64,000 nt of DNA from Anthoceros angustus (lineage: Eukaryota; Plantae; Anthocerotophyta), in NCBI GenBank assembly GCA_010909165.1, contig VJWM01000203.1, positions 124,001 through 188,000 of the forward strand, read 5' to 3'. The notes beneath the pieces are model-generated. The model was not told the DNA's origin, did no database searches, and saw only the letters and a list, made by a program, of their open reading frames with translations. The position numbers and the translations under genes are program-made. Each line of letters starts with the position of its first letter. The first letter of the stretch is position 1. Shown piece after piece: positions 18,142 through 42,533 of the stretch.

Positions 18142-20892
18142 ATGTTGGGATGTTTGGAATTGCACCAAGTCCCTACCCCAATGTCTGGACGACTAATACA
18201 GGTGCTTTGCAAGGAGGGCCGCCTGCATGAAGCATTGCTTGTTCTTTTTCACAAGGAGGAGCAGGGAAGTGTGCCTTCTATCCTTGTTTACAAGACGCTG
18301 CTGCGGGCTTGCACGAAGCAGAGGGCCCTTGCTGGGGCCAAGAGAGTGCACAGTCATTTGGCCAAACACGGATTCGAGTCCCACAGAGTACTGGGGAACC
18401 TTGTGGTGACTACTCTCATCCACTGTGGGGGCCTTGCGGACGGGCTCCAGTTGTTCTGGACACTTGTGCACAGAACCGCTTTCTGTTGGACAGCAGTCAT
18501 CTCCGGATACATCAGAGGCGGACAATTTCATGAGGCTCTCTCGTGCTATGAGCAGATGCGGAAGGAGGGTGTACAGCCTGACAGCTACACTTTTGTCAGG
18601 TTACTGAATGCTTGCAGCAAGGTAAGAGACCTGGAAACTGGGAAGCGGATGCATGCTGACGCTGTGGCCCACGGCCTTGCTTCGGATGTGGTCATAGGCA
18701 ACACATTGGTTCACATGTATGCAAAGTGCGGAGGCATCGACACTGCACAGCAGGTGTTCGATGGGTTATCTGAGCGGAGTGCAGTGTCTTGGAATGCGAT
18801 GCTTGCAGCATATGCTGGGAGGGAGCAAGGGGAGCTCGCCTTGGAGCTGTATGAGCAGATGCAAGAGGCGGGGGTGAAGCCAAATGCAGTGACCTTCGTG
18901 ACTGCAATACAAGCTTGTGAAACCATGGCGGAAAAGGAGATAAGGGCAGTTGTCCATGGACGATTTGTCAAAGTCCACGCCCTGCGCCATGGCAAAAAAA
19001 TGCATGCTGACGCTACATTGATGGGGTTCGAAGCTGACATATTTGTGGGTAGTACTTTGGTCAAGATGTATTCAAAATGTGGGAGCATCAAGGATGCAGA
19101 AGTCTCCTTCCAGAGGCTGTCTAAACGGGACTTGGTGTCTTGGAATGCCCTGATTGCAGCCTATGCAGAGCATGACCTGGGAGAAAAGGCGTTGCAGGTG
19201 TTTAAGCAGATGCAAGAAGAAGGGGTGGGGCCAGATGCACGGACCTTTGTCAGTGCTCTCCAAGCTTGTGGCAGCCTTGGAGAAGCTGAAGATTCTGCAT
19301 ATGTGGACGAGCAAGATGTGAAGGTGAAATCGCTGCATACTGGAAAGGGCATCCATGCTGGGGCTGCAGGAAGGGGCTTTGATTCGAACCTTTTCGTTGG
19401 AAACACATTGGTTAGCATGTACGCAAAGTGTGGAAGCATTGCCAATGCGCAACATGTGTTTGATGGATTGACCAGGCGTAGTGCAGTATCGTGGAATGCA
19501 TTGCTTGCAGGTTATGCTCAGCAAGAGCACGGGCAGAAAGCTTTGCACATCTATCAGCAAATGCAGGAAGAAGGCGTCAGGCCAAATGCACGGACCTTGG
19601 TGGGCACGCTCCAAGCCCGTGGCAGGCTCGCAGAAAAGGAGCAAAGTGTAGTAGTGGCTGGGCGAAATGTGAAATTGGAGTCACTGCGGAAGGGTAGGGA
19701 GATACATGCAGGAGCAATTAGATGGGGGTTGGAAGCAGACATGTTTGTCAGTAGCGGTTTAGTGGGAATGTATGCGAAGTGCGGTAGCATCAAGGATGCA
19801 GAAGAGGTGTTTGATAGGCTGTCCCAGCGCGATGTTGTTGCGTGGACCGCCATGATTGCAGCCTATGTGGAGCAAGAGCAAGGGGAGCAGGCTTTGCAAC
19901 TGTATGGCGAAATGAAAGTGCAAGGTGTAAAGGCACATGAGGCTACATTTGTTGCTGTGTTGGAAGCCTGTGGCACTACAGGAGCCTTGGGCATGTGCAA
20001 ACTCATCCACAGAGACATCGTGGAAGCTGAGCTGGACGAGTCCAGTATTTGCGTGGCGACCAGTCTGATTCATGCTTACGGCACATGTGGAAGCATGAGG
20101 GATGCTCAGTCTGTGTTCAACTCCCTAGCTCGGCCCAGTGTAGTGACGTGGAATGCGCTGATGGCTGGTTATGGTCATGTAGGAGATGGGTGTGCGATGA
20201 CACTGCGATGCTTTGAGGAGATGTGTAGCGCAGGCGTGAAACCAACAGGTCAAACATTTGTGGCACTTCTGTCTGCCTTCAGTCATGCGGGCATGGTGGA
20301 AACAGGATTGGGGTACTTCGAGAGCATGAGCAGAGATCACGGCATTTTGGCAGGGGTGGAGCATTATGCTTGTGTTATGGATCTCGTGGGTCGGGCAGGT
20401 CTGTTTGACAAGGCAGAAGAGCTACTGAGAGACATGCCCATGCAGCCTACTTTGCATGTGTGGTTGTGTTTGCTGAGTGCCTGCCGAAAGCATGGCAATT
20501 TGGCGCTTGCACAGCGCGCCTTCAGTCGGGCAGTGGAGTTGGAGCCAAAACATAGTGCAGCCTATCGGTTGATGTCGAACCTTTATGCTGATGCTGGCAT
20601 GCAGGAGCGTGCTGTGGAGGTGGAAAGGCTTAGGCAGATGGCCAGCGCGTGGAAGGAGCCTGGGCAAAGCTGGATAGAGTATGGGCAAAGGGTGCACACA
20701 TTTATTGTAGGAGATGGCAGGCATGAGCAGGAGAAGGCGCTGCACGGGTTGGTCAAAGATTTGACCGCTTGCGTGAATGAGTGCAATGCAAGCAAAAGTT
20801 TCAAGTTTCCCCTGGAGATCGAACATGAGGAGCCTCCAAAAGGCTTGTATTACAAGCATGGTATTCCAGGTTACAGCACAAGCAAACCTTGA
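18142..20892 (+). CDS. PLS-class PPR protein, E+ (PG box, no deaminase signature), with three insertion-bearing L motifs
   Basis: 916-aa uninterrupted ORF; repeated MYAKCGS/VSWNAM motifs, E1-E2, then WKEPGQSWIE...HTFIVGD; no HxE or CxxC. Confidence 0.92.
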   Translation: MLGCLELHQVPTPMSGRLIQVLCKEGRLHEALLVLFHKEEQGSVPSILVYKTLLRACTKQRALAGAKRVHSHLAKHGFESHRVLGNLVVTTLIHCGGLADGLQLFWTLVHRTAFCWTAVISGYIRGGQFHEALSCYEQMRKEGVQPDSYTFVRLLNACSKVRDLETGKRMHADAVAHGLASDVVIGNTLVHMYAKCGGIDTAQQVFDGLSERSAVSWNAMLAAYAGREQGELALELYEQMQEAGVKPNAVTFVTAIQACETMAEKEIRAVVHGRFVKVHALRHGKKMHADATLMGFEADIFVGSTLVKMYSKCGSIKDAEVSFQRLSKRDLVSWNALIAAYAEHDLGEKALQVFKQMQEEGVGPDARTFVSALQACGSLGEAEDSAYVDEQDVKVKSLHTGKGIHAGAAGRGFDSNLFVGNTLVSMYAKCGSIANAQHVFDGLTRRSAVSWNALLAGYAQQEHGQKALHIYQQMQEEGVRPNARTLVGTLQARGRLAEKEQSVVVAGRNVKLESLRKGREIHAGAIRWGLEADMFVSSGLVGMYAKCGSIKDAEEVFDRLSQRDVVAWTAMIAAYVEQEQGEQALQLYGEMKVQGVKAHEATFVAVLEACGTTGALGMCKLIHRDIVEAELDESSICVATSLIHAYGTCGSMRDAQSVFNSLARPSVVTWNALMAGYGHVGDGCAMTLRCFEEMCSAGVKPTGQTFVALLSAFSHAGMVETGLGYFESMSRDHGILAGVEHYACVMDLVGRAGLFDKAEELLRDMPMQPTLHVWLCLLSACRKHGNLALAQRAFSRAVELEPKHSAAYRLMSNLYADAGMQERAVEVERLRQMASAWKEPGQSWIEYGQRVHTFIVGDGRHEQEKALHGLVKDLTACVNECNASKSFKFPLEIEHEEPPKGLYYKHGIPGYSTSKP

Positions 20893-21299
20893 GACACAGC
20901 AGAACCATTGAACTGGTGAACAATTCAACAAGAAAGACATGAGCAATCAACCCATCCACCCAATCACAAGGTGAATCAAGAGGAGCAAACCAAGCATCTA
21001 CCGACCCACCCAACCAAGCACGTGAAGCAATGATATGGACACGTTTCTCCTTCTTTGCCGGATTGCAGTGAAAGCAGGTGGTCGACGCTCCACCTGCAGC
21101 ACGGGGCTGCTTGCTGTAAATTTCGTGCAGATGTTTCAGCTGGGATACTTGGTCACTGGCGCATGCTCTTGAACGTGGAGGACAAGGCAAGCAAGATGTG
21201 AAGAAGAAACTGGCAGGAGCCGGACGACATTAATCCGCCCGAAGGAGGAAGAGAGGAAAGGAATGGTGCAGCACTAGACTACGTCATGGCCCACTAAGA

Positions 21300-21899
21300 T
21301 CACTTGGGCCAGACACTGACTTTCTCCTTCTCCAACTTAATGAAGAGGGCGGCTGCGCTGAGCATGAAGTAAGCCTGCAAGAAGATGGTGGAGGAGTCAT
21401 GGAAGTTGATGAAGCTGGTGCCTGTGGCCAGTTCCACCAGCAGGACAGCCGCCAGCCCCAGAGCTGCAAACTTGCCGTTGAGCCGCTCCGAGTAGGAATT
21501 GAAGCCCAGCTGCACGGGCAGCCCGCTAGACACAGCTTCCCGCAGGGGAACCGCAGGCAAAAACAGCGAGGCTGCTTTGCCACCACCATCTCCTGATGCT
21601 ACTGCTGCTGCTGCTGCTGCTCCTCCTTCCTTCCTGGCTTTGCGAATCTCCGCCTTCTTGCCCGTCCCGCTCGTCACCTTGCGCTGCAGCTTGCTCAGCC
21701 GAGCCTCGAATTCATCGTCCGACTCCACCTGCGTCTCGGACGACTCGGAGCCAGAGACATCGCCACCGGAAGATTCCAGGGCCCGAGCTGCCACTTTGCG
21801 TCCAGACAATGCCCTGGGCTTGGAGCGAGCTCCCACAGAGATGCGGTTGCTGGGGAGCAGAGCCAAAGGCAGGGCTAGCCCTGCTGATGCTACTGCCAT
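21300..21899 (-). CDS. LHC-like stress-enhanced protein (SEP5-like), plastid transit peptide, intronless
   Basis: GFNSYSERLNGKFAALGL...VELATG matches the chlorophyll-binding helix motif ERxNGRxAxxG; conserved SGTGKKAEIRK and KEKVSVWP; Ala/Ser-rich N-terminus. Confidence 0.8.
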   Translation of the reverse strand: MAVASAGLALPLALLPSNRISVGARSKPRALSGRKVAARALESSGGDVSGSESSETQVESDDEFEARLSKLQRKVTSGTGKKAEIRKARKEGGAAAAAAVASGDGGGKAASLFLPAVPLREAVSSGLPVQLGFNSYSERLNGKFAALGLAAVLLVELATGTSFINFHDSSTIFLQAYFMLSAAALFIKLEKEKVSVWPK

Positions 21900-22149
21900 G
21901 GATCACTCCCAAGTTGGATATTTGTATGCGACACTGGTTTCCTCCTGTTTCGTCACAATGAGAGGCTCACGACTGAGCAATCCGAAGCACTCGGCTATAA
22001 CTTGAATGTGGGCGCCCCTTTTACAGCAGCACCGCAGAAGTGTAGGATACATATCATCTCTCCTTGTGTTTGTGTCTGTGTTTGTCTGGATACATAGACT
22101 GTCTTCCCGTATTTTTCACGATCCACTCAGACACAGGCATGCTTGCACA

Positions 22150-22260
22150 CCATTACAGGAATCAGCTGTGAGGCATGAACCTGATGGGGATTCCCAGTCC
22201 GTGTGGAGCTGCTGCTGCGTGTTGTGGGGAGCAGGGTGTGGCGATTCTGTGCAAGCAGGG
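22150..22260 (+). pseudogene. 5' stub of a PPR gene, paralog of the 23819 gene, with the start codon deleted
   Basis: GAGGCATGAACCTGATGGGGATTCCCAGTCC...TTCTGTGCAAGCAGGG...CTGGACAAGG aligns with 23841-23948. Confidence 0.75.
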
Positions 22261-22468
22261 TTGTGCTGGACAAGGGGGGTGGGTTTGTCACCAAGCAAGT
22301 GACCACATCCTGCCTAAGCTGCTCGTATGCACTCCCACTTGTAGTTGAAAATGGAGTAGGCGCTGAGCAAGCAGACATTCAGAAATCTCCTCCTACCTAT
22401 GTAAGTTGTCATGCAATGGATTTCGCAGTTCCTGAATTCAGCTACACTGTACGCCACCCTGTCTGTGG

Positions 22469-23454
22469 TCATTGCAGAAAGTAGCCGGACAGGAAAAGCG
22501 CAAAGAAGAATGCCAAGGTCCCGTAGATCAAGAGACTCTTCTGCCCGGATGTTAGTGAGTTGCCGCCTAGGCCGTAACTCTGGTTCTGTGCGAAGCCTGC
22601 CACCTCAATGCTCTTGCTCCTGAAGTAGCCCTGCGCAGCTCCGCATGTGGGGCACCGCCAGTCCTCTGGCAGATCCCTGAATGCCATCCCTGGTGCAATG
22701 GGGTAGTTCTTATCACCAAGAGCTTGGTCGTACACATAGCCGCAAGATGAGCATTCATATATCCCCGTGTTCAGCACAGCAAACCGCTCCTCCAGCCCTT
22801 TCACAGCCCAACAAAGCCCACACGAAACTCTCAGTGCATCCACAAGAAACTCTATCCATTGGTGGCGTTGGCATGTGTTCAGCAATCTGCTTGTACGCAC
22901 ACGGAGCAGGAGCAGGAGCAGGAGCAGACTGAATGAATTTGTACCTCTTCGAGGATCCAGCTTTTCGGAGCTTTGTGTGGAAGCAGAGGAGGCCTCATCC
23001 TTCTCCTCATTCTCCACATCCACAGGGCCCGCCTGGCAATGCACATCTTGTCTTTGCCTCTGCCTCCTCTTCCTGCTGCTGCTACTGCCCACCGAGCTCA
23101 AGAGAGGCACACCGGCGAGTGTCTGACCACCACATGTCACTTGATGCTCAGCATGGCAGCTGCAAACTGCGCTTGGGCAGGGAATGGCATGGCATGGCAC
23201 AAGTAGAGCAGTGTCTTTCTCACCTGGGGCAGTGCCCCGACTGTGACCGTGACGGGACGCAGCTTCGTGCATTCCCTGCTTCCAGTGCCGCAAGGCAGTA
23301 GAGCCCTGCCACACGCTCCACTCAAGCTGCCTGCCATGGCTCTCTCTCTGGTTTTGCCTGCGGTGCCCCTGGAGCGAGCTGCAACAGAGGAGCGGCTGCT
23401 GGGGAGCAGTGTCAAGGGCAGGGCTAGCGCTGCTGCTGCTGCGGCTGCTGCCAT
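22469..23454 (-). CDS. RBD1: Plastid rubredoxin with C-terminal TM helix (RBD1-like, PSII assembly); predicted exons 23454-23224, 23122-22945, 22797-22469
   Basis: FAVLNTGIYECSSCGYVYD...LPEDWRCPTCGA (two CxxC motifs)...AGFAQNQSYGLGGN...FLSGYFLQ. GT-AG junctions (CAG|GTGAGA, CAG|ACA, GAG|GTAC, AAG|GG) give a continuous 245-aa frame. Confidence 0.85.
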
Positions 23455-23818
23455 CGATCACTCCCAAGATGGCTATCGTTTTGCAACACTACACTTCTGC
23501 CCTCATGTTTCTGTCACAATGAGAGGCTTATTACGACGGGGGAATCTGTAGCACTTGGCTAGAAATTGAATCGGGCCATCCCTTTTACAGCAGCAGTGTG
23601 GTAGACAAGTCCAGGATACAAATAATCTCTCCCGTGTGTGATTGTGTTTGTCTACATAGACTGTCTGCCGTAATTGTAATGATCCAGACAGTCTCACGCA
23701 CAGGCACGCATGCACACCATCACAGGAATGAGCACGAGCAAGGACAGCGGAGCGGTACCCCGGGAAGGGCAAGGTCAAGGTCAAGGGCACGGGCAAGGGC
23801 ACTTTCCTCTGGCTTGGG

Positions 23819-26800
23819 ATGCAGGTCCTGGATCAGCTGGGAGGCATGAACCTGGCGGGGATTCCCAGCCCATGTGGAGTTGCTGCTGCTGCGTGTCCTG
23901 GGGAGCAGGATGTAGAGATTTTGTGCAAGCAGGGCTCGCTGGACAAGGCGGTGGCTGCTTTGCTCCGCTGCCACACCGTTCCTTTGGCGCATGTGTACAA
24001 GAACCTGCTGCACGCCTGCACCCACAACAAGACTTTGGCAGAGGCCAAGAGTGTGTGCCAGCACCTGCTACACCACGGGCTGCTGGATTCGGATGCGCAT
24101 CTGGGCAGCCTTGCAGTCACCACGTTGCTCAGCTGTGGAAGCCTTGCGGATGGCCTGCAGGTCTTCCGCACCTTGTCCCACAGAAGTGTGTTTGCTTGGA
24201 CGGCCATCATCTCCGGCTACTGCAATGCCGGCAATTCTCGTCAGGCTCTGGCATGCTATGACCAGATGCAGCAGGAAGGCGTGCAGCCGGATACCTACAC
24301 CTTGGTCACCCTGCTCAAGGCTTGCACCATGCTGCAGGATTTGCAGGAGGGTAGGAGAATCCATGCTCATGCTCGGGCACTGGGCTTGGCGTCGGATGTG
24401 TTTGTGGGCAGTTCCTTGGTTAGCATGTACGCCAAGTGTGGGAGTGTTGCGGATGCGCATCAGGTTTTTCATGCTTTGCCCTTCCGCAATGTGGTGTCGT
24501 GGAACGCCATGCTGGCAGCTTATGCCCAGCAGGAGCAAGGAGCAAAAGCTCTTGACATTTATCGACAGCTGCTGCAACAAGAGGGGATCAGGCCCGATGC
24601 ACGCACATTCGTCGCCGCCCTCCAAGCTTGTGGCAGCCTAGCCGAGGAGGAGCAGGATGCCATACTTGTGGATGGCTTACATGTGAAGGTGAGCTCTCTG
24701 CACAAGGGGAGACAAGTCCATGCCCAAGCCATGGAGGCTGGGTTCGGGACGGATGTCTATGTTGGCAACACCTTGGTCAGCATGTACTCGAAGTGCGGGA
24801 GCATCAGGGATGCACATCGGGTGTTTGAAGGCTTGTCCCACCCCAATGTGGTCTCGTGGTCCGCCATGATTGCAGCTCATGCTCAGCAGGACGAAGGTGA
24901 AAAGGCCTTGCGCCTCTTTTGGCAGATGCAAGAGCAAGGCTTCAGTCCAGTGGCTCGTACCTTCGTTAGTGCCCTCCAAGCATGTGGCAGCCTTGCGGAC
25001 CAGGAGGAAAGTGTTATTGTGGATGGGCAACTTCTGAGGGTGGACTCGCTGCGAAAGGCAAGGGAGCTACATGCTGGAGCGAACGAGAGCGGGTTTGCAT
25101 CCGATTTGTATGTACAGAACACTGTGGTCAGTGTGTATGCAAAGTGTGGGAGCATCATGGATGCCCAGCAGGTGTTCGATGAGCTGTCTAAACGCAATTT
25201 AGTGTCATGGAATGGGATGCTTGCAGCGTATGCACAGCAGGACCAAGGAGAAAACGCGTTGCAGCTCTTTTGGAGAATGGAAGAGGAAAGGATCCAGGCA
25301 GATCCACGCACCTTTGTCAGTGTCCTCCAAGCTTGTGGCAACCTTGCCGACAAGGAGGAAAGTGTATCCGTGGATGGGCAAAATGTGAAGGTGCGATCTT
25401 TGCAAAGGGGCAGGCATATACATGCTCGAGCATCCCAGAATGGTTGTGAATCTCACGTCTTCGTTCAGAACACTTTGGTCAGTATGTATGCAAAATGTGG
25501 GAACATTAGGGAAGCTCGGCACGTGTTTGAGGAGCTTCCTGACCCCAATGTAGTTTCCTGGAATGCCATGCTTGCAGCCTATGCTCAGCAGGGTGAAGGA
25601 GAAAACGCCTTGCAGATTTATGAGCAAATGCAAGAGGCAGGGTCAAACCAATGTCTCGGACTTTTGTAAGTGCTCTTCAGGCCTGTGGCAGCCTCGCAGG
25701 AGAGGAAGAATACACACTCGTGGATGGGTGGAATGTAAAGGTTCAGTCCCTTTGCAAGGGCAAGCAAGTACATGCCCGAGCTGTGATTGGTGGTTTTCTA
25801 TCTGATGCTTTTGTCGCTAATACGTTGGTAGGTATGTATGCAAAGTGCGGGAGCATACAGGACGCTGAGCAGGTGTTTGACGCCTTGACTCAGCGTGACG
25901 TCGTGTCATGGAATGCCATGATTGCAGCATATGCTCAGGAGGACCAGGGTCACAGGGCCCTGCAACTCTATTCCCAGATGCAAGCTGAGGTGTGACGTCA
26001 AACGAGGCCACATTTGTTGCTGTACTGGAGGCATGCAGCAGCACAGGAGCCTTGGAAGTGTGTGCAGAAATCCACCAATGCGTTATTGAGAATGGATGGG
26101 GCTCCAGCTTTTCTCTGGCAACCAGCCTGATCGATGCATATGGGAAATGTGGGAGCATGGTGGACGCACACTCCGTTTTCAGTCACTGGCTCGGCCTAAT
26201 GTGGTGTCCTGGACTGCACTATTAACTGGGTATGCACGGTTAGGAGATTGTGCCATGAGTATAAAATGCTACGAGGACATGTGCATGGCAGGTGTCAAAC
26301 CAGACCGGGTCACCTTTTGGCACTCCTGTCAGCATGCAGCCATGCTGGAATGGTGGACGAGGGATTATACTACTTCGACAGAATGTTCAGGGATCATGGC
26401 ATCTGTCCGGAGCTGGAGCATTATGCTTGCATGATCGATCTTGTCGGCCGTGCAGGACTCTTCAGCAAGGCAGAGGATTATCTTTCGCATATGCCAATGC
26501 CCCTAATCTGCCCGTGTGGTTGTGCTTGCTGGGTGCCTGCAGAACGCATGGCAACGTGTTACTCGGGGAGACGGCGTTCCATGGTGCCGCCAGCTTAGAT
26601 CCGAAGCACACAGCTGCGTATGTGCTCATGTCAACTATTTATGCTGAAGCAAGCATGCACGACCGCGCAAGGGGAGATAGATGATTTGAGACAAAGCGCA
26701 GGTGTTTGAAGGCTTGTCCCACCCCAATGTGGTCTCGTGGTCCGCCATGATTGCAGCTCATGCTCAGCAGGACGAAGGTGAAAAGGCCTTGCGCCTCTTT

Positions 26801-28762
26801 TGGCAGATGCAAGAGCAAGGCTTCAGTCCAGTGGCTCGTACCTTCGTTAGTGCCCTCCAAGCATGTGGCAGCCTTGCGGACCAGGAGGAAAGTGTTAGTG
26901 TGGATGGGCAACTTCTGAGGGTGGACTCGCTGCGAAAGGCAAGGGAGCTACATGCTGGAGCGAACGAGAGCGGGTTTGCATCCGATTTGTATGTACAGAA
27001 CACTGTGGTCAGTGTGTATGCAAAGTGTGGGAGCATCATGGATGCCCAGCAGGTGTTCGATGAGCTGTCTAAACGCAATTTAGTGTCATGGAATGGGATG
27101 CTTGCAGCGTATGCACAGCAGGACCAAGGAGAAAACGCGTTGCAGCTCTTTTGGAGAATGGAAGAGGAAAGGATCCAGGCAGATCCACGCACCTTTGTCA
27201 GTGTCCTCCAAGCTTGTGGCAACCTTGCCGACAAGGAGGAAAGTGTATCCGTGGATGGGCAAAATGTGAAGGTGCGATCTTTGCAAGGGCAGGCATATAC
27301 ATGCTCGAGCATCCCAGAATGGTTGTGAATCTCACGTCTTCGTTCAGAACACTTTGGTCAGTATGTATGCAAAATGTGGGAACATTAGGGAAGCTCGGCA
27401 CGTGTTTGAGGAGCTTCCTGACCCCAATGTAGTTTCCTGGAATGCCATGCTTGCAGCCTATGCTCAGCAGGGTGAAGGAGAAAACGCCTTGCAGATTTAT
27501 GAGCAAATGCAAGAGGCAGGGGTCAAACCAATGTCTCGGACTTTTGTAAGTGCTCTTCAGGCCTGTGGCAGCCTCGCAGGAGAGGAAGAATACACACTCG
27601 TGGATGGGTGGAATGTAAAGGTTCAGTCCCTTTGCAAGGGCAAGCAAGTACATGCCGAGCTGTGATTGGTGGTTTTCTATCTGATGCTTTTGTCGCTAAT
27701 ACGTTGGTAGGTATGTATGCAAAGTGCGGGAGCATACAGGACGCTGAGCAGGTGTTTGACGCCTTGACTCAGCGTGACGTCGTGTCATGGAATGCCATGA
27801 TTGCAGCATATGCTCAGGAGGACCAGGGTCACAGGGCCCTGCAACTCTATTCCCAGATGCAAGCTGAGGGTGTGACGTCAAACGAGGCCACATTTGTTGC
27901 TGTACTGGAGGCATGCAGCAGCACAGGAGCCTTGGAAGTGTGTGCAGAAATCCACCAATGCGTTATTGAGAATGGATGGGGCTCCAGCTTTTCTCTGGCA
28001 ACCAGCCTGATCGATGCATATGGGAAATGTGGGAGCATGGTGGACGCACACTCCGTTTTTCAGTCACTGGCTCGGCCTAATGTGGTGTCCTGGACTGCAC
28101 TATTAACTGGGTATGCACGGTTAGGAGATTGTGCCATGAGTATAAAATGCTACGAGGACATGTGCATGGCAGGTGTCAAACCAGACCGGGTCACCTTTTT
28201 GGCACTCCTGTCAGCATGCAGCCATGCTGGAATGGTGGACGAGGGATTATACTACTTCGACAGAATGTTCAGGGATCATGGCATCTGTCCGGAGCTGGAG
28301 CATTATGCTTGCATGATCGATCTTGTCGGCCGTGCAGGACTCTTCAGCAAGGCAGAGGATTATCTTTCGCATATGCCAATGCCCCCTAATCTGCCCGTGT
28401 GGTTGTGCTTGCTGGGTGCCTGCAGAACGCATGGCAACGTGTTACTCGGGGAGACGGCGTTCCATGGTGCCGCCAGCTTAGATCCGAAGCACACAGCTGC
28501 GTATGTGCTCATGTCAACTATTTATGCTGAAGCAAGCATGCACGACCGCGCAAGGGAGATAGATGATTTGAGACAAAGCGCAGGTGCCTGGAAAAAACCT
28601 GGCCAAAGCTCCATCGAGCTTGACCAGGTGCTGCACACATTTGTGGTTGGAGACCACCGTCATCCACAAGCAGTTGCGCTTCACAAACTGCTTGACACTG
28701 TGAGTTCAGAGCTCAAGGAGGCAGGTCACAATGATCCCATGAAATCCTCAAGATGCTGGTAG
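23819..28762 (+). CDS. PLS-class PPR, E+ (PG box), with four insertion-bearing L motifs; disrupted by an internal 1.88-kb tandem duplication and homopolymer frameshifts
   Basis: ORF pieces 23819-25669, 25651-25995, 26702-27328, 27354-27665 and 27608-28762 assemble into one PPR ending WKKPGQSSIE...HTFVVGDHRHP. Confidence 0.8.
24820..28582 (+). repeat. Tandem duplication 24820-26700 / 26701-28582 with GGTG junction microhomology
   Basis: By eye, the copies differ by one substitution (ATT/AGT at ~25016/26897) and by homopolymer indels only. Confidence 0.9.
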
Positions 28763-29079
28763 TGATGTCGCAGCATGCCAGTCTCTTCCAGGTACACTCT
28801 CCTGTCTGTTTAGATCTCCTGAAACTGCACTGTCGTGTGTCGAAAGTTGGGTGTGTTATGCATAGTCTACACTGGCTGGCATGGCACTATCATCGACATG
28901 TAGAACGTTTATCATCTAAGCTGGCAGTGAGTGAGCTCCCCGGCAGTTGTCATCTCCCATCATCATCTTGTTCTTCATTCATGCTAGACGCACCTCCCCA
29001 GTGGAGTAACAGAGGACACGTCCATCGCCACGGACAGTACAAAGTGTTCCACGCTGCCCAACTCCTGTCCAGGTGAGAA

Positions 29080-32079
29080 TCAAGGGCCATCTCCGCATGA
29101 GCAGAAGCCATTCACAAAATGGTGCACATGGTGTGCATCTCTGACAATAATCTCACGCTTCTCAATCCTGGACATAATCTTGGTGCCGCTGTGGCAGTCA
29201 CCGCACATGCGTAAATTCTTGGTGACGACCAAAGGTGAGCCATCGGGAGTATTAAGGAGTCCATACGCCAGTGCCAGCTTCTCAGCATGGCCACACAAGG
29301 CATCTTCCTTCTCTCTCTCTGAAACTGGCTTCAAGACCAACTCCGTGTGCGGCTCATGGCCTCCCTTCTGCTCGAACTGCAGGTTCACACTCTTGAGCTT
29401 GCCGGAAATGTCATTCCTTTCTTCCCCCACCACGAAAGAGTGCACTTTGCTCCTCACCTCAATCCAGGCCCTGGCAGGCTTTTTGCAAGCACCTGCAGAA
29501 ACTCTCAGGCGTTCTATCATATCCACATCACTCCACCTACCGGCATCCGCGTAGGTGTTGGCTAGGAGCATGTATGCAGCTGCATTCTGCGGTTCCAACT
29601 GAATGAGCTGATCAAAGCACCGCCTTCCACGTTCTACATCTCCGTGGCCCTTGCAGGCGGTCAGCAAAGATGTCCATCCCACGGCATCATGCTCCAACGG
29701 CATGGTTAGCAGAAACCTTTCTGCCTCATCCAGGCGGCCTGACCTGGCCATGAGGTCGACCATGCAATTGTAGTGATAAATGGTGGGTGCAAGGCCATAT
29801 TCTTCCACCATAATGTCGAAATACTGCCGTCCCTCCTGCACCATGCCTTGGTGACTGCATGCCACCAGCAGGCAGATGAAAGTGGTTTCATCAGGTTCAA
29901 CACCATGCCGTTGCATCTCTTTGAAACACTGCATTGCCAAGTGGCTGTGGTTATGCTGGCTGTACCCATTCAGCAGCGCATTCCACGTCACCACGTTCTT
30001 GGTTGGCAGTCTGTCAAACACCTTGCGAGCATCTTCCACACTCCCGCATTTTCCATACATGTCAACAAGGCTGCTACCAACAACGACGTCCAATTCCAGG
30101 CCTCGTTCCTGGATATCCAAGTGCAGCTGCTTCCCTTGATTCAAGGCCCCCACGCTAGCACATGCTTTCAGGAGGGAAACAAAGGTCACATTACTGGCGG
30201 CAGTCATTGCCTCCTGTTGCATACTTGCATAAAGCGACAGAGCTTCCTCACCAACCCCTTGCTGAGCATAGCCTGTGATCATGGCATTCCATGTCACGAC
30301 ATTTCGTATTGGCAACCTGTCAAACAGTCTCCGAGCATCCTCTAAACTCCCGCATTTGGCATACATGTCCACCAGGCTGTTGCCAATGAGCGTATCAGCT
30401 TCCAAACCCCTTTCTTGAATCTGGCCATGAAGCTCCTTGCCTGCTCGTAAATCTCTAACAATTGCACAAGACTTTAGCAAGCAAACAAACGTGACATTAT
30501 CAGCAAGAGTCGTACCCTCTTGCTGCATGCAGCCATATAGGGCCAGGGTTTCTCGACCGAGCCCATGCTGAGCATACCCTGCAATCATAGAATTCCAGCT
30601 GAGCAAGTCCCTCTTGGGCATGCGGTCAAATACCTTGCGAGCATCCCCTATGCTCCCACATTTGGCATACATGTCCACCAAGCAGTTGCTTACGGCCACA
30701 TCAGTCGCAAGTCCCCTTTGCTGGATTTGACGATGAAGCTCCTTGCCATCATGCAATGCTCCAACCGAGGCACATGCTTTCAGAAGGCAGACAAATGTGA
30801 CATCATTGGGCACCGCTGCTCCCTCCTGCTGCATACTTGCATAGAGGGTGAGGGCTTCTTGACCACGCCCATGTTGAGCATATCCTGCAATCATGGAAGT
30901 CCATGACACCACATCTTTTGTGGACAGACCATCAAACACCAGTCGTGCATCTTGTAAACTCCCACACTTTGCATACATGTCCAACAAGGCATTGCCGACG
31001 AAAATATTGGGCTGAACCCTACTCTCCAAAACAGCAGCATGCACCTGCTTGCCACATGCCAGATCTGCTGCAGCTCCACAGGCTTTAAGGACTGCCACGA
31101 ATACGTAGTTGTCTGCTTCTACCCTGGACAGGCGCATCTGTTCGTATAATCTGATAGCCTGGGTAGGTTGTCCATGTTCAGCATGTGCCAAAATGATGGA
31201 CGCCCACATGAAGCAGTCTGGTGCATCCAACTTGGTTAAGACCTGAACTGCTTCCTGCAACCTGCCTTGAGAAGCATACATGCGGATGATGTGATTGGCC
31301 AGAAATGTGTTGGACTCGTGACCACTCTTAAGAGCAAGGGCATGAGCACGCCTGCCAACAACCACATCTTTCTGTGCAATACACTTCTTGAGAACATGGT
31401 AAAAAGGTGCTGGAGGGACGTACGGCCTCTCCTGCACCAGAAGGTCCAAAGCCTCAACGGCCTCCCCCAGCTGCCCATGTTGGCACAGCCTCTCCCACGT
31501 TCTCACCTCCAAACTCCTGCATCCCCAGAACGGCTCAATCGAGTGATAATCCAACTCTAAAGACAGATGGAGGTGCAATAGCGGAGCACAGTTCGGACCT
31601 CTCACAGTCAGCTTTACGGTCCCATCCGACCTGGTCTGATTTTGTACACCCACCACCAGTCTGTGCTGCGGGCCCTAGCTCCCCATGTAGTTCCACCTCC
31701 TCCAGGTACCTCCCCTGCCATACAGAAGCAAACATTTGAGCGTCCCACCAACACCTGCTGCTGGCCTTTGCATAAATGGACTGCAAATTCACAACGTTGT
31801 CAAGCCTCCCAAATTTTTACCTTCTTGTCCCACCCCGTCTGGGAGTCTGTCAGATCCTTGTCCCACAATGCCTGGCTTGCAATCGGCTCCACTGCAAGCC
31901 AGCTAGAAATAAGATACCACGGAGAATCGGACGCCAGCCATGCGGGCACGCAACTACTCACCAGAGCCGAGAGCAGATGTTCGGCGTTGTTTTGCTCCTC
32001 GCAGTGATGACAGCTGTCTGGAACTGGAGGTGGTGTGAATCAGGCTGGCCGCACCCTTCTTCACTCGCCCTGCAAACAT
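29080..32079 (-). CDS. PLS-class PPR with DYW:KP domain (candidate U-to-C editing factor), C-terminus DGP; predicted leader exon 32079-31962 spliced to 31556
   Basis: KKPARAWIEV...LCGHAEKLALAYG...KNLRMCGDCH...HHFVNGFCSCGDGP. The ORF-track start at 31656 is a GTG. An upstream Arg/Ser-rich exon (MFAGRVKKGAASLIHTTSSSRQLSSLR...) ends at G|GTGAGT and joins in phase at CTTTAG|AG. Confidence 0.88.
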
Positions 32080-32142
32080 GATCTTTGGTCAGTTGGTGTC
32101 GGCTGTCGTTATTGCTTATAGCCTTCAGCTGTATTTGTAGCC

Positions 32143-32560
32143 ATGATCTCCTTTCTGGGCCGATCTACTAGAAGAGCTGGATGCAGTTGTCCTGAACCTA
32201 GGGGGGTGCCCAGGTGTGAAGGCATCTCAATCGTAAAAACCTGGAGCTAGGCAAAGAGAGGAAGACCATCTCGGACCTCTTGGTTCAGCATTCAGCGAGG
32301 ATGGAATGTTCCGTCAAGAGTCTGATTATATGCTATGCGTTGTGCTCACAGGCCGCATAGAACAGGAAGATTTGATTGTTGCAGTCTAGAGACAGGAGGA
32401 CACGGAGCAAGCGCTTTCTTATCCAACCCCCTCATCCGGCTGCACACTTCTCATGGGCTATGGGAGGAAGCAACGCAGGTGCTTATTAGCGAGCAAGCTA
32501 TGAGCTGCCACGGACGGACGGCTTCATGTGGGCTTCCATAATTCTGGCATATGGCCGGGC
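32143..32560 (+). pseudogene. Degenerate 5' stub paralogous to the DYW:KP gene at 39723
   Basis: ATGATCTCC...GTGTGAAGGCATCTCAATCGT...TTCAGCGAGG...TTCTTATCCAACC...CTTCTCATGG aligns with 39723-40110, with frameshifts and deletions. Confidence 0.8.
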
Positions 32561-32908
32561 ATCGACATCCCATGCAGGCAGGCTGTGATGAAACTAAAGC
32601 GCAGGGCACGAAAGATACACTGGTTCTCATCGGGCCAATGCACAGCAGTCAGCAGTGTAAGAGCCACAGACGAAATGGGGTAAATCGAGGAGGCATGGAA
32701 TGTCTTGAATTACAGCGGTCTGTAAAGTGAATGGTTCCACAGAGGGCTGCTGCTGGCTTCTCAGATGAATTAGCCACTTCGTGAATGCTTTCTCGCTATG
32801 CTGCAAGCTCAGTTGCTGCGGGAGATTCCACTTCCTTCCAGGTGGTGTGTGCTTGTTGTTGTTCTTGTGTAGAAACGCACTTCATGTCTCCTCACCTCCT
32901 CCTCCACG

Positions 32909-35275
32909 ATGCTCACATGTTGTCACTTGTTTGGTAGCAGGGACCAACTTGGCTGTGGGGATCATGCACATCAGGTTGAGATTTTGTGCAAAGCTGGAAA
33001 GATGACGGAGGCATTGGCTGTGCTGGTTTGTATGGAACAGCAGGGGAGTGTCCCTTCCGTGCACCTGTGTAAGAGCTTGTTGCAGGTGTGCTTGCAACAG
33101 AAGAAAGGCTTTGCCCAAGCCCAAGCCCGAACCCATGCCCAAGCCCAAGCCCAGGTCAGGTGCATACATGCTCTTCTGGCAAAGTACGGCTTGGATTGCA
33201 ACGCCTGCGTGGGAGAGCTTCTGGTTGCCGCACTTGTTGGCGCTGGGAGCTTTGCAGAGGGAGTCCAGTTGTTCCGGAGCTTGCCACAGCGAACCTCCTT
33301 CTCTTGGACAGCCCTTGTGTCAGGTTATAGCGACAGGGGCCAGTGTCGGGAGGCTCTTTCCTGTTTCCAGCACATGCAACAGGAAGGCGTGCAGCCCAAC
33401 AACTACACGTTTGTCAGCTTACTGAAAGCATGCAGCAGGGCCAAGGATCTGGAGCAAGGCAGGCACATTCACGCTGCGGTTGCAAGGTATGGATCTGAGT
33501 CAGATGCTTTTGTTGGCAGCAGTTTGGTAAGTATGTATGCCAGATGTGGCAGCATTGTGGATGCACAGCAAGTGTTTGATAGATTATCGGTGCGAACTTT
33601 GGTGACCTGGAATGCGATGCTCGCAGGGTACAATCATCAGGGGGATGCTGAAATGGCCTTGCAGATGTACTGGCAGATGCAGAGAGAAGGGGTCAGCCCA
33701 GATGCGCGGACGTTTGTGAGTGCCCTTCGAGCATGTGGGAATCTTGCTGCAAAGGAGGAAAGTACAGTTGTGGATGGGCGGGATGTGAAGCTGCTGTCAC
33801 TGCACACCGGGAAGGAACTGCATGCTGCAGCTGCTCCAATGGGTTTCCAAGCGGATGTGTTTGTGACTAGCATCTTGGTAAGCGTCTATGCGAAGTGTGG
33901 GAGTGTAATGGATGCACGACAGGTGTTCAATTCGAATGCGAAGCGCGATGTGGTGTCGTGGACTGCCATGCTGACAGCATTTTGTCAGCAGGGCCTAGGA
34001 AAAGAGGCCCTGCAGATCTATCGACAAATGAGGGGAGAGGGTTTGAGGCTGGATGTATGGGCCTTTGTCACAAGTCTCCAGGGTTGTGGCATGGTTGCAG
34101 ACAAGGAGAAAAGCGTCCTTGTGGATGGGAGGATAGTCAAGGTAGACTCACTGCGGCAGGGTAAGGAAGTACATGCGGAAGCTGTGAGAATGGGATTTGG
34201 ATCAGATGATTTTGTCAACAGTGCAGCAATATGTATGTATTCAAAGTGTGGGAGCATCAAGGATGCAGAGCGGGTGTTCCACTCTTTGTCCAAGCATGAT
34301 TTGGTGTCTTGGACTGCCATGATTTCGGCATATGCTCAGCAGGAGCAGGGAGAAAAAGCCTTGCAACTTTATGCCCAGTTGGAGGAAACGGGCATGACAC
34401 TGGATGAGGGCACGTTTGTGTCTATCTTGGAAGCATGCAGTCGCGCAGGGGCCTTGAGCACCTGTGTCCAGATCCATGGGAGGATACGAGAGAGTGGATT
34501 TGAGCAGAGTCTTTGTGTGGCAAACAGTCTCATTCATGCATACAGCGAGTGTGGGAGCATGCAGGATGCTCAGAACGTGTTTGACTCATTGCCCCAGCCT
34601 GATGTCATATCGTGGACGGCGCTAATTGCTGGTTACGCTCGCCAAGGAAGTTTTGAGTTGAGTGTGGAGTGCTACGAGAGAATGTGTTGGAAAGGAGTGA
34701 AACCAAACGGAGTCACATTCATCTCTTTGCTATTGGCATGTACTCATGCCGGCATGGTGGAGAAAGGACTGGAGTTGTTTGGAAACATGAGCAAGGAGAA
34801 TGACATTTCTGTGGAGCTCGAGCATTATGCTTGTGTCATCGATCTGGTCAGTCGTGCTGGGCTCTTCAGCATCACAGAAATTATGCTTTCGCAGATGCCC
34901 ATGGAACCTGATTTGACGCTGTGGTTGTGTTTGCTGGGTGCCTGTCAAAAACATGGTAACGTGCTGCTTGGGAAGCGTGCCTTCCATGGTGCTGTGGGAT
35001 TGGAGCCACAGCACTCTGCAGCATATGTGCTGATGGCAAACATCTATACGAATGCTGGATTCTGGGACTGTGCGCAGGAAGTAAATACTTTGAGACTGTG
35101 TGCAGGTGCATGGAAGAACCCTGGCCAGAGCTGGATCCAGCATGAACAACATGTGCACACATTCCTCGTGGGCGATCGCAGGCATGAACATGAGGCAATG
35201 GTTTATGCTTTGCTGGATCATTTAAGCACAGACCTGAAGCAGGTGGGGTACATTGGCCTCACAGATTCTGGATGA
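32909..35275 (+). CDS. PLS-class PPR, E+ (PG box), with two insertion-bearing L motifs
   Basis: 788-aa uninterrupted ORF ending WKNPGQSWIQ...HTFLVGDRRH...GYIGLTDSG, stopping before the HxE motif. Confidence 0.92.
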   Translation: MLTCCHLFGSRDQLGCGDHAHQVEILCKAGKMTEALAVLVCMEQQGSVPSVHLCKSLLQVCLQQKKGFAQAQARTHAQAQAQVRCIHALLAKYGLDCNACVGELLVAALVGAGSFAEGVQLFRSLPQRTSFSWTALVSGYSDRGQCREALSCFQHMQQEGVQPNNYTFVSLLKACSRAKDLEQGRHIHAAVARYGSESDAFVGSSLVSMYARCGSIVDAQQVFDRLSVRTLVTWNAMLAGYNHQGDAEMALQMYWQMQREGVSPDARTFVSALRACGNLAAKEESTVVDGRDVKLLSLHTGKELHAAAAPMGFQADVFVTSILVSVYAKCGSVMDARQVFNSNAKRDVVSWTAMLTAFCQQGLGKEALQIYRQMRGEGLRLDVWAFVTSLQGCGMVADKEKSVLVDGRIVKVDSLRQGKEVHAEAVRMGFGSDDFVNSAAICMYSKCGSIKDAERVFHSLSKHDLVSWTAMISAYAQQEQGEKALQLYAQLEETGMTLDEGTFVSILEACSRAGALSTCVQIHGRIRESGFEQSLCVANSLIHAYSECGSMQDAQNVFDSLPQPDVISWTALIAGYARQGSFELSVECYERMCWKGVKPNGVTFISLLLACTHAGMVEKGLELFGNMSKENDISVELEHYACVIDLVSRAGLFSITEIMLSQMPMEPDLTLWLCLLGACQKHGNVLLGKRAFHGAVGLEPQHSAAYVLMANIYTNAGFWDCAQEVNTLRLCAGAWKNPGQSWIQHEQHVHTFLVGDRRHEHEAMVYALLDHLSTDLKQVGYIGLTDSG

Positions 35276-39657: not shown

Positions 39658-39722
39658 GACCTGGAATTCAAAACTTCAAAATCGCTGCTGTCATATGCCT
39701 GCCGTCAGGAGCATTTGTGGCA

Positions 39723-42533
39723 ATGATCTCCTTGTTGAGCAGATCTGCTGCGAGGACAGCTGGACGCACTTGTCCTGAACCTGGCGGGTTGGCACGGTGT
39801 GAAGGCATCTCAATCGTTAAATCCTGGAACAGGCAAAGGGAGGAAGACGAGCATCTGGAGTCTATTATCACAGCCTTGGACAACTTGGTTCAGCGAGGGT
39901 GGTATGTTCCGTCAACAGTGTTATACATCATCCTTAAGGGCTGCATAGAAAAGGGCGATCTGGTGGTAGGAAGGAGGGTTCATGATCTTGCACAAACAGG
40001 TGGGCACGGGTCGAACGCCTTCTTATCCAACCACTTCATCCGCATGTACGCTTCTCATGGACTACTGGAGGAAGCAAGGCAGGTATTCAGCAGCCAAGCT
40101 GCACCGGACGCCTTCATGTGGGCTTCCATGATTCTGGCATATGCCGAGCATGGATATCCTGTGCAGGCTGTGAAACTGTACCGACAGGCGCAAGTACAGT
40201 CGAAGGTGATGCCCGACAGTCACCTATTTGTTGCGGCCCTGAAAGGATGTGCCTCTGCTGCGGACTTGACAGCTGGCAAGCAGATCCATGCCGACATTCT
40301 GACAAGCTCAGTGGAGCCCAATGTGTTTATGGGCAATGCCCTTGTGGACATGTATGCAAAGTGTGGGAGCTTGGAAGATGCTCGCAGAGTTTTTGACAAA
40401 TTGCCCTTGAAGGATGTGGTGACATGGAATGCCATGATCGGAGGGTACGCACAGCATGGGCTCGGTCATGAAGCCTTGGCACTTTGCACCAGTATGCAAT
40501 TGGAGGGCATCACTCAATCCAGTCGTGTTACCTTCGTATGCCTGTTGAGTGCTTGTGCCAGCATCGGTGCCTTGCACAGGGGAAAGGAGCTTCATTCGCA
40601 GATTCAGGAACAAGGACTGGAATCTGATATCGTGGTCGGGAACAGCCTGATAGACATGTATGCAAAGTGTGGGAGCCTAGAGGATGCTCGCACAGTGTTT
40701 GCCGGTTTGCGCAGCAAAGAAGTGAGGACGTGGAATGCTATGATTGCAGCATATGTGCAGCATGGGCTTGGGGAAGAGGCCCTCACTCTCTTCGAAGCCA
40801 TGCAACAGGAAGGCACCGCTAAAAAGAACGAAGTTACTTTCCTGTGCCTTCTAAAGGCTTGTGCTCTTGTTGGAGATTTATATCAAGGGAAGCGACTCCA
40901 TCGTGAGATTCAGGACAAGGGACTAGAGGCTAATGCCTCCATCGGCAGTAGCCTGGTGGACATGTATTCAAAATGCGGCAGCGTGGATGACGCTCACCAG
41001 GTGTTTGCTGCATTGCCTGTGAAAGATGTGGTGACCTGGAATGCAATGCTTGCAGGATACGTTCGTCATGGCCTTGATCAAAAAGGCCTCGCTTTGTATG
41101 CAAGCATGCAACAGGCAGGCATCACACGACCAGATGATGTCACACTTGTGTGCCTCCTGAAGGCATGTGCCAATGTCGGAGCATTAAATGAGGGCAAGAG
41201 GCTCCATTACCTGATTCGGGAGAGCAGAGTTGAATGTGATGTGGTAGTTGGCAGCAGTCTGATTGATATGTATGCAAAATGTGGGAGCATAGAGGAGGCT
41301 CGTGACGTGTTTGATAGACTGCCCTGCAAAGACGTAGTGACATGGACTGTTCTGATCACGGCATACACAGAGCAGGGGCACTGTCGAGAAGCTCTTACAC
41401 TGTATAGGAGAATGGAACAGGAGAGCATCATTCCAGCCAGTCCAACGTTATTTGTGTGCCTCCTCAAAGCATGTGCACGGATTGGAGCCATACATCAGGG
41501 GAAGAAGCTTCACTCCCGGATCCGAGAAAGGGGACTTGAGGCTGATATTGTGATTGCCAACAGTCTGGTGGACATGTACGCAAAGTGTGGGCGCCTCGAG
41601 GATGCTAGAGCAGTGCTTGATGGATTGCCCACAAGAGATGTTGTGACCTGGACTGCTTTGCTGAACGGCTACAGCCTGCACAGCAACAGCCAAATGGCCT
41701 TTCAGTGCTTCCGTGAAATGCAGCAGGACGGGGTGACACCTGATGCTGCTGCTTTCACTTCTCTTCTTGTGGCATGCAGTCACAGCGGTCTGGTGCAAGA
41801 AGGTAAGCAGTTGTTCAAGCTGATGGTGGAAGGGTACGGCATCACCCCCTCGGTTCATCACTTTACTTGCATGGTTGATCTGCTCGGCCGGTCAGGCTAC
41901 CTAGATGAGGCAGTAAACATGTTGCAGACCCTGCCATTTGAGCCTGGTGCTGTGGGATGGACTTCTCTTTTGAGTGCCTGCCAAAGCCATAACAATGTGG
42001 ACCTTGCAAACCGGTGTTTCGACCACCTTGTCAGACTGCAACCTCAGAACTCAGCCGCATATGTGATGCTAGCTAACATATATGCACATGCCGGTAGGTG
42101 GAAGGACGTAGATAGAATAGAAGGCTTAAGGAAGTCTGCAGGTGCATGTAAAGAGCCCGCAAGGGCCTGGATTGAGGTGAGCAATGCGGTTCACATGTTC
42201 TGCGTTGGAGAAGAAAGGGCCGACGTTTCCTACAGGCTCAGGAGCGTCAGGGTGCGGTTAGAGGAGGACAGCCATGTGCCGTGTGAAGGCACAGAGGAAG
42301 GCTATGGCGATACTCTGTGTGGACATGCCGAGAAACTGGCATTGGCCTATGGTCTCCTGAACACTCCAAATGGTACAACTTTGCTCGTCACAAAAAACCT
42401 CCGCATGTGCAATGACTGTCACAGTGGCACTAAGAGGCTGTCGAGGATCGAAAAACGAGAGATCATAGTACGAGATGTACACCGCGTTCATCACTTTGTG
42501 GACGGGTTTTGCTCATGCGGAGACCTACGTTGA
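39723..42533 (+). CDS. PLS-class PPR with DYW:KP-type domain (candidate U-to-C editing factor), C-terminus DLR
   Basis: First ATG at 39723 (39717 is GTG); Arg/Ser-rich N-terminus; KEPARAWIEV...LCGHAEKLA...CNDCH...HHFVDGFCSCGDLR. Confidence 0.9.
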   Translation: MISLLSRSAARTAGRTCPEPGGLARCEGISIVKSWNRQREEDEHLESIITALDNLVQRGWYVPSTVLYIILKGCIEKGDLVVGRRVHDLAQTGGHGSNAFLSNHFIRMYASHGLLEEARQVFSSQAAPDAFMWASMILAYAEHGYPVQAVKLYRQAQVQSKVMPDSHLFVAALKGCASAADLTAGKQIHADILTSSVEPNVFMGNALVDMYAKCGSLEDARRVFDKLPLKDVVTWNAMIGGYAQHGLGHEALALCTSMQLEGITQSSRVTFVCLLSACASIGALHRGKELHSQIQEQGLESDIVVGNSLIDMYAKCGSLEDARTVFAGLRSKEVRTWNAMIAAYVQHGLGEEALTLFEAMQQEGTAKKNEVTFLCLLKACALVGDLYQGKRLHREIQDKGLEANASIGSSLVDMYSKCGSVDDAHQVFAALPVKDVVTWNAMLAGYVRHGLDQKGLALYASMQQAGITRPDDVTLVCLLKACANVGALNEGKRLHYLIRESRVECDVVVGSSLIDMYAKCGSIEEARDVFDRLPCKDVVTWTVLITAYTEQGHCREALTLYRRMEQESIIPASPTLFVCLLKACARIGAIHQGKKLHSRIRERGLEADIVIANSLVDMYAKCGRLEDARAVLDGLPTRDVVTWTALLNGYSLHSNSQMAFQCFREMQQDGVTPDAAAFTSLLVACSHSGLVQEGKQLFKLMVEGYGITPSVHHFTCMVDLLGRSGYLDEAVNMLQTLPFEPGAVGWTSLLSACQSHNNVDLANRCFDHLVRLQPQNSAAYVMLANIYAHAGRWKDVDRIEGLRKSAGACKEPARAWIEVSNAVHMFCVGEERADVSYRLRSVRVRLEEDSHVPCEGTEEGYGDTLCGHAEKLALAYGLLNTPNGTTLLVTKNLRMCNDCHSGTKRLSRIEKREIIVRDVHRVHHFVDGFCSCGDLR

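Follow-up and report, generated by a model that had tools for sequence, protein, structure and literature searches.

Proteins of the PLS class of pentatricopeptide repeat (PPR) proteins carry tandem P-L-S triplets of motifs, and the canonical L1 motif is reportedly 35 amino acids long in the motif sets of Lurin in 2004 and Cheng in 2016. In papers of 2025–26, L motifs are likewise 35–36 amino acids in length (PMC13324415, PMC12733224). Here, we describe L motifs of 51–52 residues in a cluster of PLS-class PPR genes of the hornwort Anthoceros angustus, located in a stretch of 64,000 nucleotides (assembly GCA_010909165.1, contig VJWM01000203.1, positions 124,001 to 188,000 of the forward strand), which is the whole stretch of DNA that was analyzed and is called the window below, with coordinates counted from its first letter. 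These motifs, called long L motifs, represent a translated 51-amino-acid L type that marks one old PLS subfamily; with the more tentative addition that their hairpins work structurally, this explanation is fairly probable as a whole.

Like canonical L1, the long L motif lies between P1 and S1 and has T-F-V-x-x-L-x-A-C in helix a and L-x-x-G-K-x-x-H in helix b, this position and these flanking helix signatures having been found in the profile columns and in alignment A1; it also keeps a hydrophobic fifth residue and Asp as the last residue ('VD'), and its backbone superposes on solved L motifs. It differs from canonical L1 in its length of 51 amino acids, in the 16 residues inserted after 'AC-x-x-L', in having Arg as the commonest residue at position 2, and in being confined to an uninterrupted internal block in one clade. 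The window copies, with their 51–52 residues, fall outside the published definition of L motifs as 35–36 residues long, in agreement with the original prediction, made from the letters alone, of a candidate new motif variant. In a literature search, no L motif of more than 36 amino acids and no insertion in the turn between helices a and b (the a-b turn) was found described, and an earlier record by specialists or in a PPR database is possible, if rather improbable.

The addition of extra protein mass to the L motif specifically, once per triplet, in arrays of editing factors is also a feature of MORF9/RIP9 bound to designer (PLS)3 (5IWW). Binding of MORF9 involves a contact at K29, within the C-terminal half of helix b, and turns the L motif by ~6 degrees (PMC11094755). 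MORF9/RIP9, however, is a separate protein of seed plants, whereas the insert is covalent, lies at the a-b turn, and is found in plants that reportedly lack MORF proteins. Another likeness is seen in the SS arrays of Selaginella, which consist of a variant repeat of editing factors that is enriched in seed-free plants and gives the array a different period (PMC8809517). In contrast to the long-L arrays, which enlarge the L motif and keep the P-L-S order, the SS arrays drop the L motif and have a repeat of 31 amino acids.

Long L motifs in the hornwort gene cluster

The PLS-class PPR genes clustered in the window have uninterrupted reading frames, except for the 23819 gene, which is broken as assembled. 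Membership in the PLS class was indicated by tandem P-L-S triplets and by matches to the Pfam families PPR, PPR_1, PPR_2, and PPR_3, with E-values down to 1e-95. The E_motif family (PF20431) was found in the 18142, 32909, and 27608 products and PG boxes were seen in the translations, as is characteristic of E1/E2 ends. In a Pfam scan of the 18142, 23819, and 32909 genes, no match to the DYW_deaminase family (PF14432) was obtained, which sets them apart from the PLS-DYW enzymes; all three genes end 20–60 residues past the PG box. An exact look-up of the window protein returned no record. The genes with long L motifs and the motifs themselves are as follows.

18142–20892, + strand: PLS-class PPR gene whose E1/E2 end has a PG box and a short E+ tail but lacks a deaminase core; order of L motifs short, short, long, long, long, short ('ssLLLs')
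18883–19035, + strand: long L motif 1 of the 18142 gene, 51 amino acids; insert at ~18928–18975
19234–19386, + strand: long L motif 2 of the 18142 gene; insert at ~19279–19326
19585–19737, + strand: long L motif 3 of the 18142 gene; insert at ~19630–19677
23819–28762, + strand: PLS-class PPR gene ending in E+, with a reading frame that is broken in the assembly, by frame-by-frame translation; the C-terminal open reading frame (ORF) at 27608–28762 carries the E motif
24596–24751, + strand: long L motif of the 23819 gene with a 25-residue loop, 52 amino acids, by pattern scan
24950–25102, + strand: long L motif of the 23819 gene; insert at ~24995–25042
25301–25453, + strand: long L motif of the 23819 gene; insert at ~25346–25393
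25651–25803, + strand: long L motif of the 23819 gene in another frame, shortly after the stop codon of the 23819 ORF, by scan and translation
26831–26983, + strand: long L motif in the second tandem copy, duplicating 24950–25102 with one residue changed, by translation
27182–27334, + strand: long L motif in the second of the tandem copies, disrupted by a frameshift near 27290, by translation
27531–27683, + strand: long L motif in the second of the tandem copies, disrupted by a frameshift near 27655, by scan and translation
32798–35275, + strand: PLS-class PPR gene with an E+ end (the 32909 gene), order of L motifs short, long, long, short, by translation, Pfam and RNA-like contigs
33701–33853, + strand: long L motif 1 of the 32909 gene; insert at ~33746–33793; AlphaFold2 elements H42-58, E62-64, E67-69, H71-87
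34052–34204, + strand: long L motif 2 of the 32909 gene; insert at ~34097–34144; AlphaFold2 elements H159-175, E179-181, E184-186, H188-206

The loop between 'AC' at the end of L helix a and 'G[KR]xxH' at the start of helix b was determined by translation and a six-frame pattern scan to be 24 residues long in the long L motifs (25 in one copy), compared with 8 residues in the ordinary L motifs of the 18142, 23819, and 32909 genes. By the same procedure, the predicted number of nine long L motifs in three genes was reproduced, with three in the 18142 gene, four in the 23819 gene, and two in the 32909 gene; three of the four in the 23819 gene are within its ORF and the fourth (25651–25803) is just beyond the frameshift. 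Three further copies, which had not been recorded in that prediction, are present in a near-identical tandem duplicate of the 23819 gene. The PLS period in the long-L genes is 351 nt, or 117 amino acids, compared with ~102 amino acids usually.

The tandem duplicate, at 26700–28570, is a ~1880-bp near-identical copy of 24820–26690, in which 1-bp indels break the frame several times. Repeat families D5–D8 have 100% identity, with a spacing of 1880–1883 nt between the tandem copies. The duplicate within the 23819 gene stems either from an error in the assembly or from a very recent duplication event, and an intact 23819 gene would reach its E+ end at ~28762.

Conservation, translation and predicted structure of the insert

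Among the eight distinct window copies, the pairwise identity of the insert compared with that of the remainder of the motif was 52% versus 52% in protein and 65% versus 62% in nucleotides, and, to judge from these alignments, the recurrence of the insert is not due to chance. A logo of 90 copies reads G-x-L-A-E-x-E-x-x-v-x-V-D-G-x-x-v-K-v-x-S-L-x-x-G-K, with E19 present in 84/90 copies, G26 in 71/90, and K30 in 71/90 (plus 11 with Arg). The conserved residues of the insert are L15, A16, E19, V24, D25-G26, and K30, with variable positions in between, and there is a conserved acidic run (E17, E19, and E20) at the base of the hairpin. The conserved positions would build the hairpin by packing the helix, forming the turn, and, possibly, clamping the base through a Glu-Lys pair. 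Position 2 of the L motif was Arg in 48% of the long L motifs, compared with Tyr in 29% and Arg in 17% of the short L1 motifs of the same proteins, and Val in 38% and Phe in 16% of those of other proteins, whereas the fifth and last code residues are 'VD' in long and short L motifs alike. Furthermore, the L motifs of ~205 proteins follow the order of zero to two short, then two to eight long, and then zero or one short, with only two exceptions, and the long motifs, therefore, form one unbroken internal block. The conservation pattern, the block order, and position 2, together with the tree of C-terminal regions described below, argue that the long L motif is a distinct PPR L motif type and not a sporadic insertion. 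A Pfam scan of the 51-amino-acid motif alone matched no family.

Evidence on splicing was available from the inserts themselves and from assembled contigs. Among the 48-nt inserts, no GT..AG pair is found at a consistent place, and the 18883 copy contains none at all. Contigs of four runs (one from the same organism and three from a close relative) cover 33625–34263 without a gap, spanning both long L motifs of the 32909 gene, and the contigs of all four runs skip 32842–32940, a segment of 99 nt with GT..AG ends. Because this intron is skipped, the contigs behave as spliced RNA, although the RNA label of the runs is a guess of the index and the contigs indicate the presence of a form and not its abundance. 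The close relative keeps both inserts of the 32909 gene in frame with conservative changes, which are N>S, S>I, and L>V in the first long L motif and T>S, V>A, and I>M in the second. The motif is also present in ORFs of the Pteridium aquilinum transcriptome.

With regard to the structure of the 32909 gene, the ATG at 32909 is lost when the intron at 32842–32940 is removed, and translation probably starts from the ATG at 32798 (MLQAQLLREIPLPS...). A second GT..AG segment of 140 nt (33487–33626) lies inside the ORF and is skipped in the contig from the same organism; in the relative, the unspliced path over 33458–33654 is represented by a separate 197-nt contig of lower depth. Because 140 nt is not a multiple of three, the splicing of 33487–33626 causes a frameshift, and the resulting protein ends ahead of the long L motifs. 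This segment resembles an exitron, and the spliced form may be non-productive.

The structure of the window protein was predicted by AlphaFold2 using alignment A1, which consists of 39 two-triplet segments, and the model had a mean predicted local distance difference test score (pLDDT) of 96.2 and a predicted template modelling score (pTM) of 0.88, with no residue below a pLDDT of 70. A second AlphaFold2 model, that of Selaginella P0267 (which has a full DYW domain; alignment A3), had a pLDDT of 96.3 and an identical set of elements. In the models, helix a of the long L motif is about five residues longer and runs through G-x-L-A-x-K, the insert forms two three-residue strands linked by a D-G turn, and helix b begins right after the conserved Lys, earlier than in the short L motif. 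Thus, both translation and modelling place the insert between the two L helices, where it had been predicted to be, and the beta-hairpin, originally a guess from the consensus, is predicted in both models with high confidence. A disordered linker was considered and rejected because of the high AlphaFold2 confidence in both models, with a pLDDT of ~96 for each.

In comparisons of the predicted fold with known and modelled structures, independent support came from the ESM Atlas, in which the cluster 'At3g12770-like' aligned over all 276 residues with a template modelling (TM) score of 0.95, and 6/9 of the other ESM Atlas rows aligned over 244 residues, which equals 276 minus 2 x 16. A feature search of the ESM Atlas with the 51-amino-acid motif returned generic PPR clusters only. 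The best solved match to the modelled two-triplet segment by VIA-align was 9kfx_A, from the structure of a synthetic PPR-DYW protein with its target RNA, with a Z of 29.5, a root-mean-square deviation of 1.4 Å, 240/272 spanned residues aligned, and 43% identity over the 240; the scaffold of the model also matched 5iww_D with a Z of 25.1. The L motifs of 9KFX, however, have a short a-b turn, leaving the 2 x 16 inserted residues of the model without a counterpart. When the motif profile was compared with PDB sequences, the L motifs of 5IWW and 9KFX were matched only via columns 1–15 and 31–51, which fixes the insertion point and indicates that no solved structure holds the insert. According to the models, the P-L-S solenoid outside the insert is unchanged.

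Taxonomic range and deaminase status

A tree of 322 proteins was constructed by FastTree from ~180 columns of the C-terminal P2-to-E2 region, which is free of long L motifs. The number of changes between the long and short states on this tree was 4, compared with ~97–101 when the labels were shuffled. One split, with a support of 97, had 194/194 long-L proteins on one side together with 9/128 short-L proteins, and one of these nine short-L tips is the C-terminal fragment of the broken 23819 gene. A single origin of the long L motif is, thus, supported by the phylogeny. The C-terminal region of gene 42739 also falls within the long-L clade, beside proteins with a divergent long L motif of the 'CLEQVR' type, and this would reflect either a secondary loss of the insert or noise in that part of the tree.

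To outline the range of the subfamily, the 51-column profile was compared with 1.84 billion representative proteins, resulting in 929 matches at E<=0.001, 413 at E<=1e-10, and 169 at E<=1e-30, most of which are in Logan assemblies; ordinary PLS proteins, which are far commoner, fall short of the profile threshold. The survey of taxonomic range that the original prediction had called for, thus, points to lycophytes and ferns in addition to this genome. Long-L members were found in Selaginella moellendorffii (e.g., XP_024539905, XP_024541853, and XP_024526917), Diphasiastrum complanatum (KAJ7521184), Adiantum capillus-veneris, A. nelumboides, and Pteridium aquilinum. The distribution of the matches indicates that the subfamily is old and occurs in lycophytes, ferns, and this hornwort. 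The long L motif was not seen in a small sample of retrieved proteins from Ginkgo (0/20), Cryptomeria (0/5), and mosses and liverworts (0/6).

The HxE...CxxC signature of the deaminase was found in 6/127 newly retrieved long-L representatives and in 13/203 tips of the long-L clade. Members in which long L motifs are combined with a full DYW domain include Selaginella XP_024526917 (P0142), Selaginella P0267, and Diphasiastrum KAJ7521184 (P0144), and the DYW-bearing members are scattered over several sub-branches of the clade. The Diphasiastrum group is sister to a large deaminase-less group that holds the window genes and those of the ferns, and Selaginella P0267 branches off at the base within its sub-branch, with a larger group as its sister. 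The simplest reading of this tree would be an origin of the long L motif in a DYW protein, followed by loss of the deaminase, probably on more than one occasion. The predicted restriction of the insert to deaminase-less PG-box E+ genes, therefore, describes the window, in which it holds, but is no general rule, because DYW-bearing long-L proteins of Selaginella and Diphasiastrum are spread over sub-branches and the deaminase appears to have been lost later. The deaminase-less PG-type gene 42739 of the window, moreover, has short L motifs.

As for the neighboring genes, 29080–31656 (− strand) and 39717–42533 (+ strand) are full-length genes of the DYW:KP type that carry the deaminase domain, with a KPARA/EPARA box and HAE...CxDCH; they terminate in GDGP and GDLR, respectively, and not in DYW, and all of their L motifs are short, with loops of 8 residues. 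Such DYW:KP genes, like the E+ subgroup that is reported to be enriched in hornworts (PMC13386178), are consistent with a hornwort genome. Gene 42739–45375 has a PG box, no deaminase, and L loops of 8–10 residues.

Possible roles of the hairpin

A PPR solenoid has its a-b turns arrayed along one edge of the ribbon, with helix a directed toward the RNA. By analogy, the hairpins would line that edge once per three repeats as rigid knobs, and we tentatively propose that they act structurally inside the RNA-binding array. The 16-residue segment lengthens L helix a, adds a hairpin closed by D-G, and advances the start of helix b; in this proposal, the larger interface between helices a and b would stiffen the L motif and set the geometry of the array, with no part in base readout. 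Every internal L1 motif of the subfamily is long in this manner, with short forms confined to the one or two L1 motifs that open the array and to the one that closes it. The structural role was deemed likeliest because the conserved residues look self-stabilizing and the exposed positions vary. It also fits such a role that the fifth and last code residues remain 'VD' as in ordinary L1 and that the base-stacking position 2 changes along with the insert. In a solved PLS-RNA complex, position 2 stacks on bases (PMC13324415), and its shift to Arg may hint at an altered RNA contact at the long L motifs.

Several points weigh against this interpretation. The acidic run of E17, E19, and E20 might just as well serve to bind a basic partner. 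In the comparison of close species, amino-acid changes in the insert were about as frequent as in the rest of the gene, indicating that the constraint is moderate. With regard to the material analyzed, the two AlphaFold2 alignments overlap, so that the models are not fully independent; the sample for the FastTree analysis was picked by similarity to a long-L query; and few proteins underlie the absence of the long L motif from seed plants, mosses, and liverworts.

The constraint on the insert, being no stronger between close species than that on the remaining gene, would also suit the alternative that the insert is a tolerated embellishment without a role of its own, which arose once, spread by the duplication of triplets within genes, and was inherited as the family expanded. 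The single origin supported by the C-terminal tree and the growth of PPR arrays by triplet duplication, as seen in the 351-nt repeat families and the 1880-bp tandem copy in the window, are in line with such a course. A neutral embellishment is, however, unlikely in our view, as the length is held at 24 +/- 1 residues, the pattern of L-A-E-x-E ... V-D-G ... K ... S-L is kept across lycophytes, ferns, and this hornwort, and the predicted order is high. Moreover, the long block is never interrupted by a short L motif, with only the end motifs being short, and a changed position 2 has accompanied the insert through a very long period.

In angiosperms, deaminases that act in trans are recruited through the C-terminal E/E+ region and not along the array, which speaks against the main alternative, unlikely on balance, that the hairpins represent a regularly spaced docking surface for a free-standing DYW deaminase or a MORF/RIP-like helper. 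In favor of a docking surface, ~90% of the sampled long-L proteins are without a deaminase, the acidic run is conserved at each hairpin base, seed-free plants are reported to be without MORF proteins (PMC8809517), and the E+ subgroup is reported to be enriched in hornworts (PMC13386178). The members with an intact DYW domain in Selaginella and Diphasiastrum argue against it, however; the hairpin seems to be older than the loss of the deaminase because P0267 is basal in its sub-branch and the Diphasiastrum DYW group is sister to the deaminase-less group. In addition, the outward-facing positions of the hairpin vary. The analogy with the binding of MORF proteins to L motifs, which had been drawn in the original prediction, is weak with respect to position, because the MORF9 contact K29, in the C-terminal half of L helix b, is at the opposite end of that helix from the insert at the a-b turn (PMC11094755). 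A basic residue equivalent to K29 is often retained at columns 46–47 of the long L motif.

As a broader analogy, the hairpin L motif could be a built-in counterpart of the helpers of the seed-plant editosome, serving either to lock the L motif in the RNA-binding-competent state induced by MORF proteins or as a periodic docking rail that brings free deaminases to the numerous deaminase-less PLS proteins of hornworts, lycophytes, and ferns, which we regard as a long shot. If true, such a built-in helper or docking rail would be a different way to assemble an organellar RNA-editing complex. The last alternative is that the extra 48 nt do not reach the mature protein, being either a spliceosomal micro-intron, as considered in the original prediction, or an artefact of annotation. 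It is hardly credible and was rejected, because, although the insert length of 48–51 nt is divisible by three and the 32909 gene has other small introns (99 nt and 140 nt), the inserts lack a consistent GT..AG pair, the spliced contigs of four runs cross both inserts of that gene without a gap, fern transcriptome ORFs include the motif, and the segment is conserved as protein and predicted to be folded.

The long L motif bears on the use of PPR motif types, because the types P, L, S, SS, E1, and E2 underlie target prediction, annotation tools, and designer RNA editors. RECODE chose only 35-amino-acid L1 motifs, and the long-L proteins are left out by such length-filtered consensus designs. The hairpin L motif is a possible scaffold element for cofactor-independent editors. 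For the family itself, the internal block of 117-amino-acid triplets provides a simple marker for an old subfamily in which the deaminase has largely been lost. The role of the L motif is the least understood part of the PLS array, and a structured, clade-defining L variant in plants reported to be without MORF helpers represents a natural experiment on that role.

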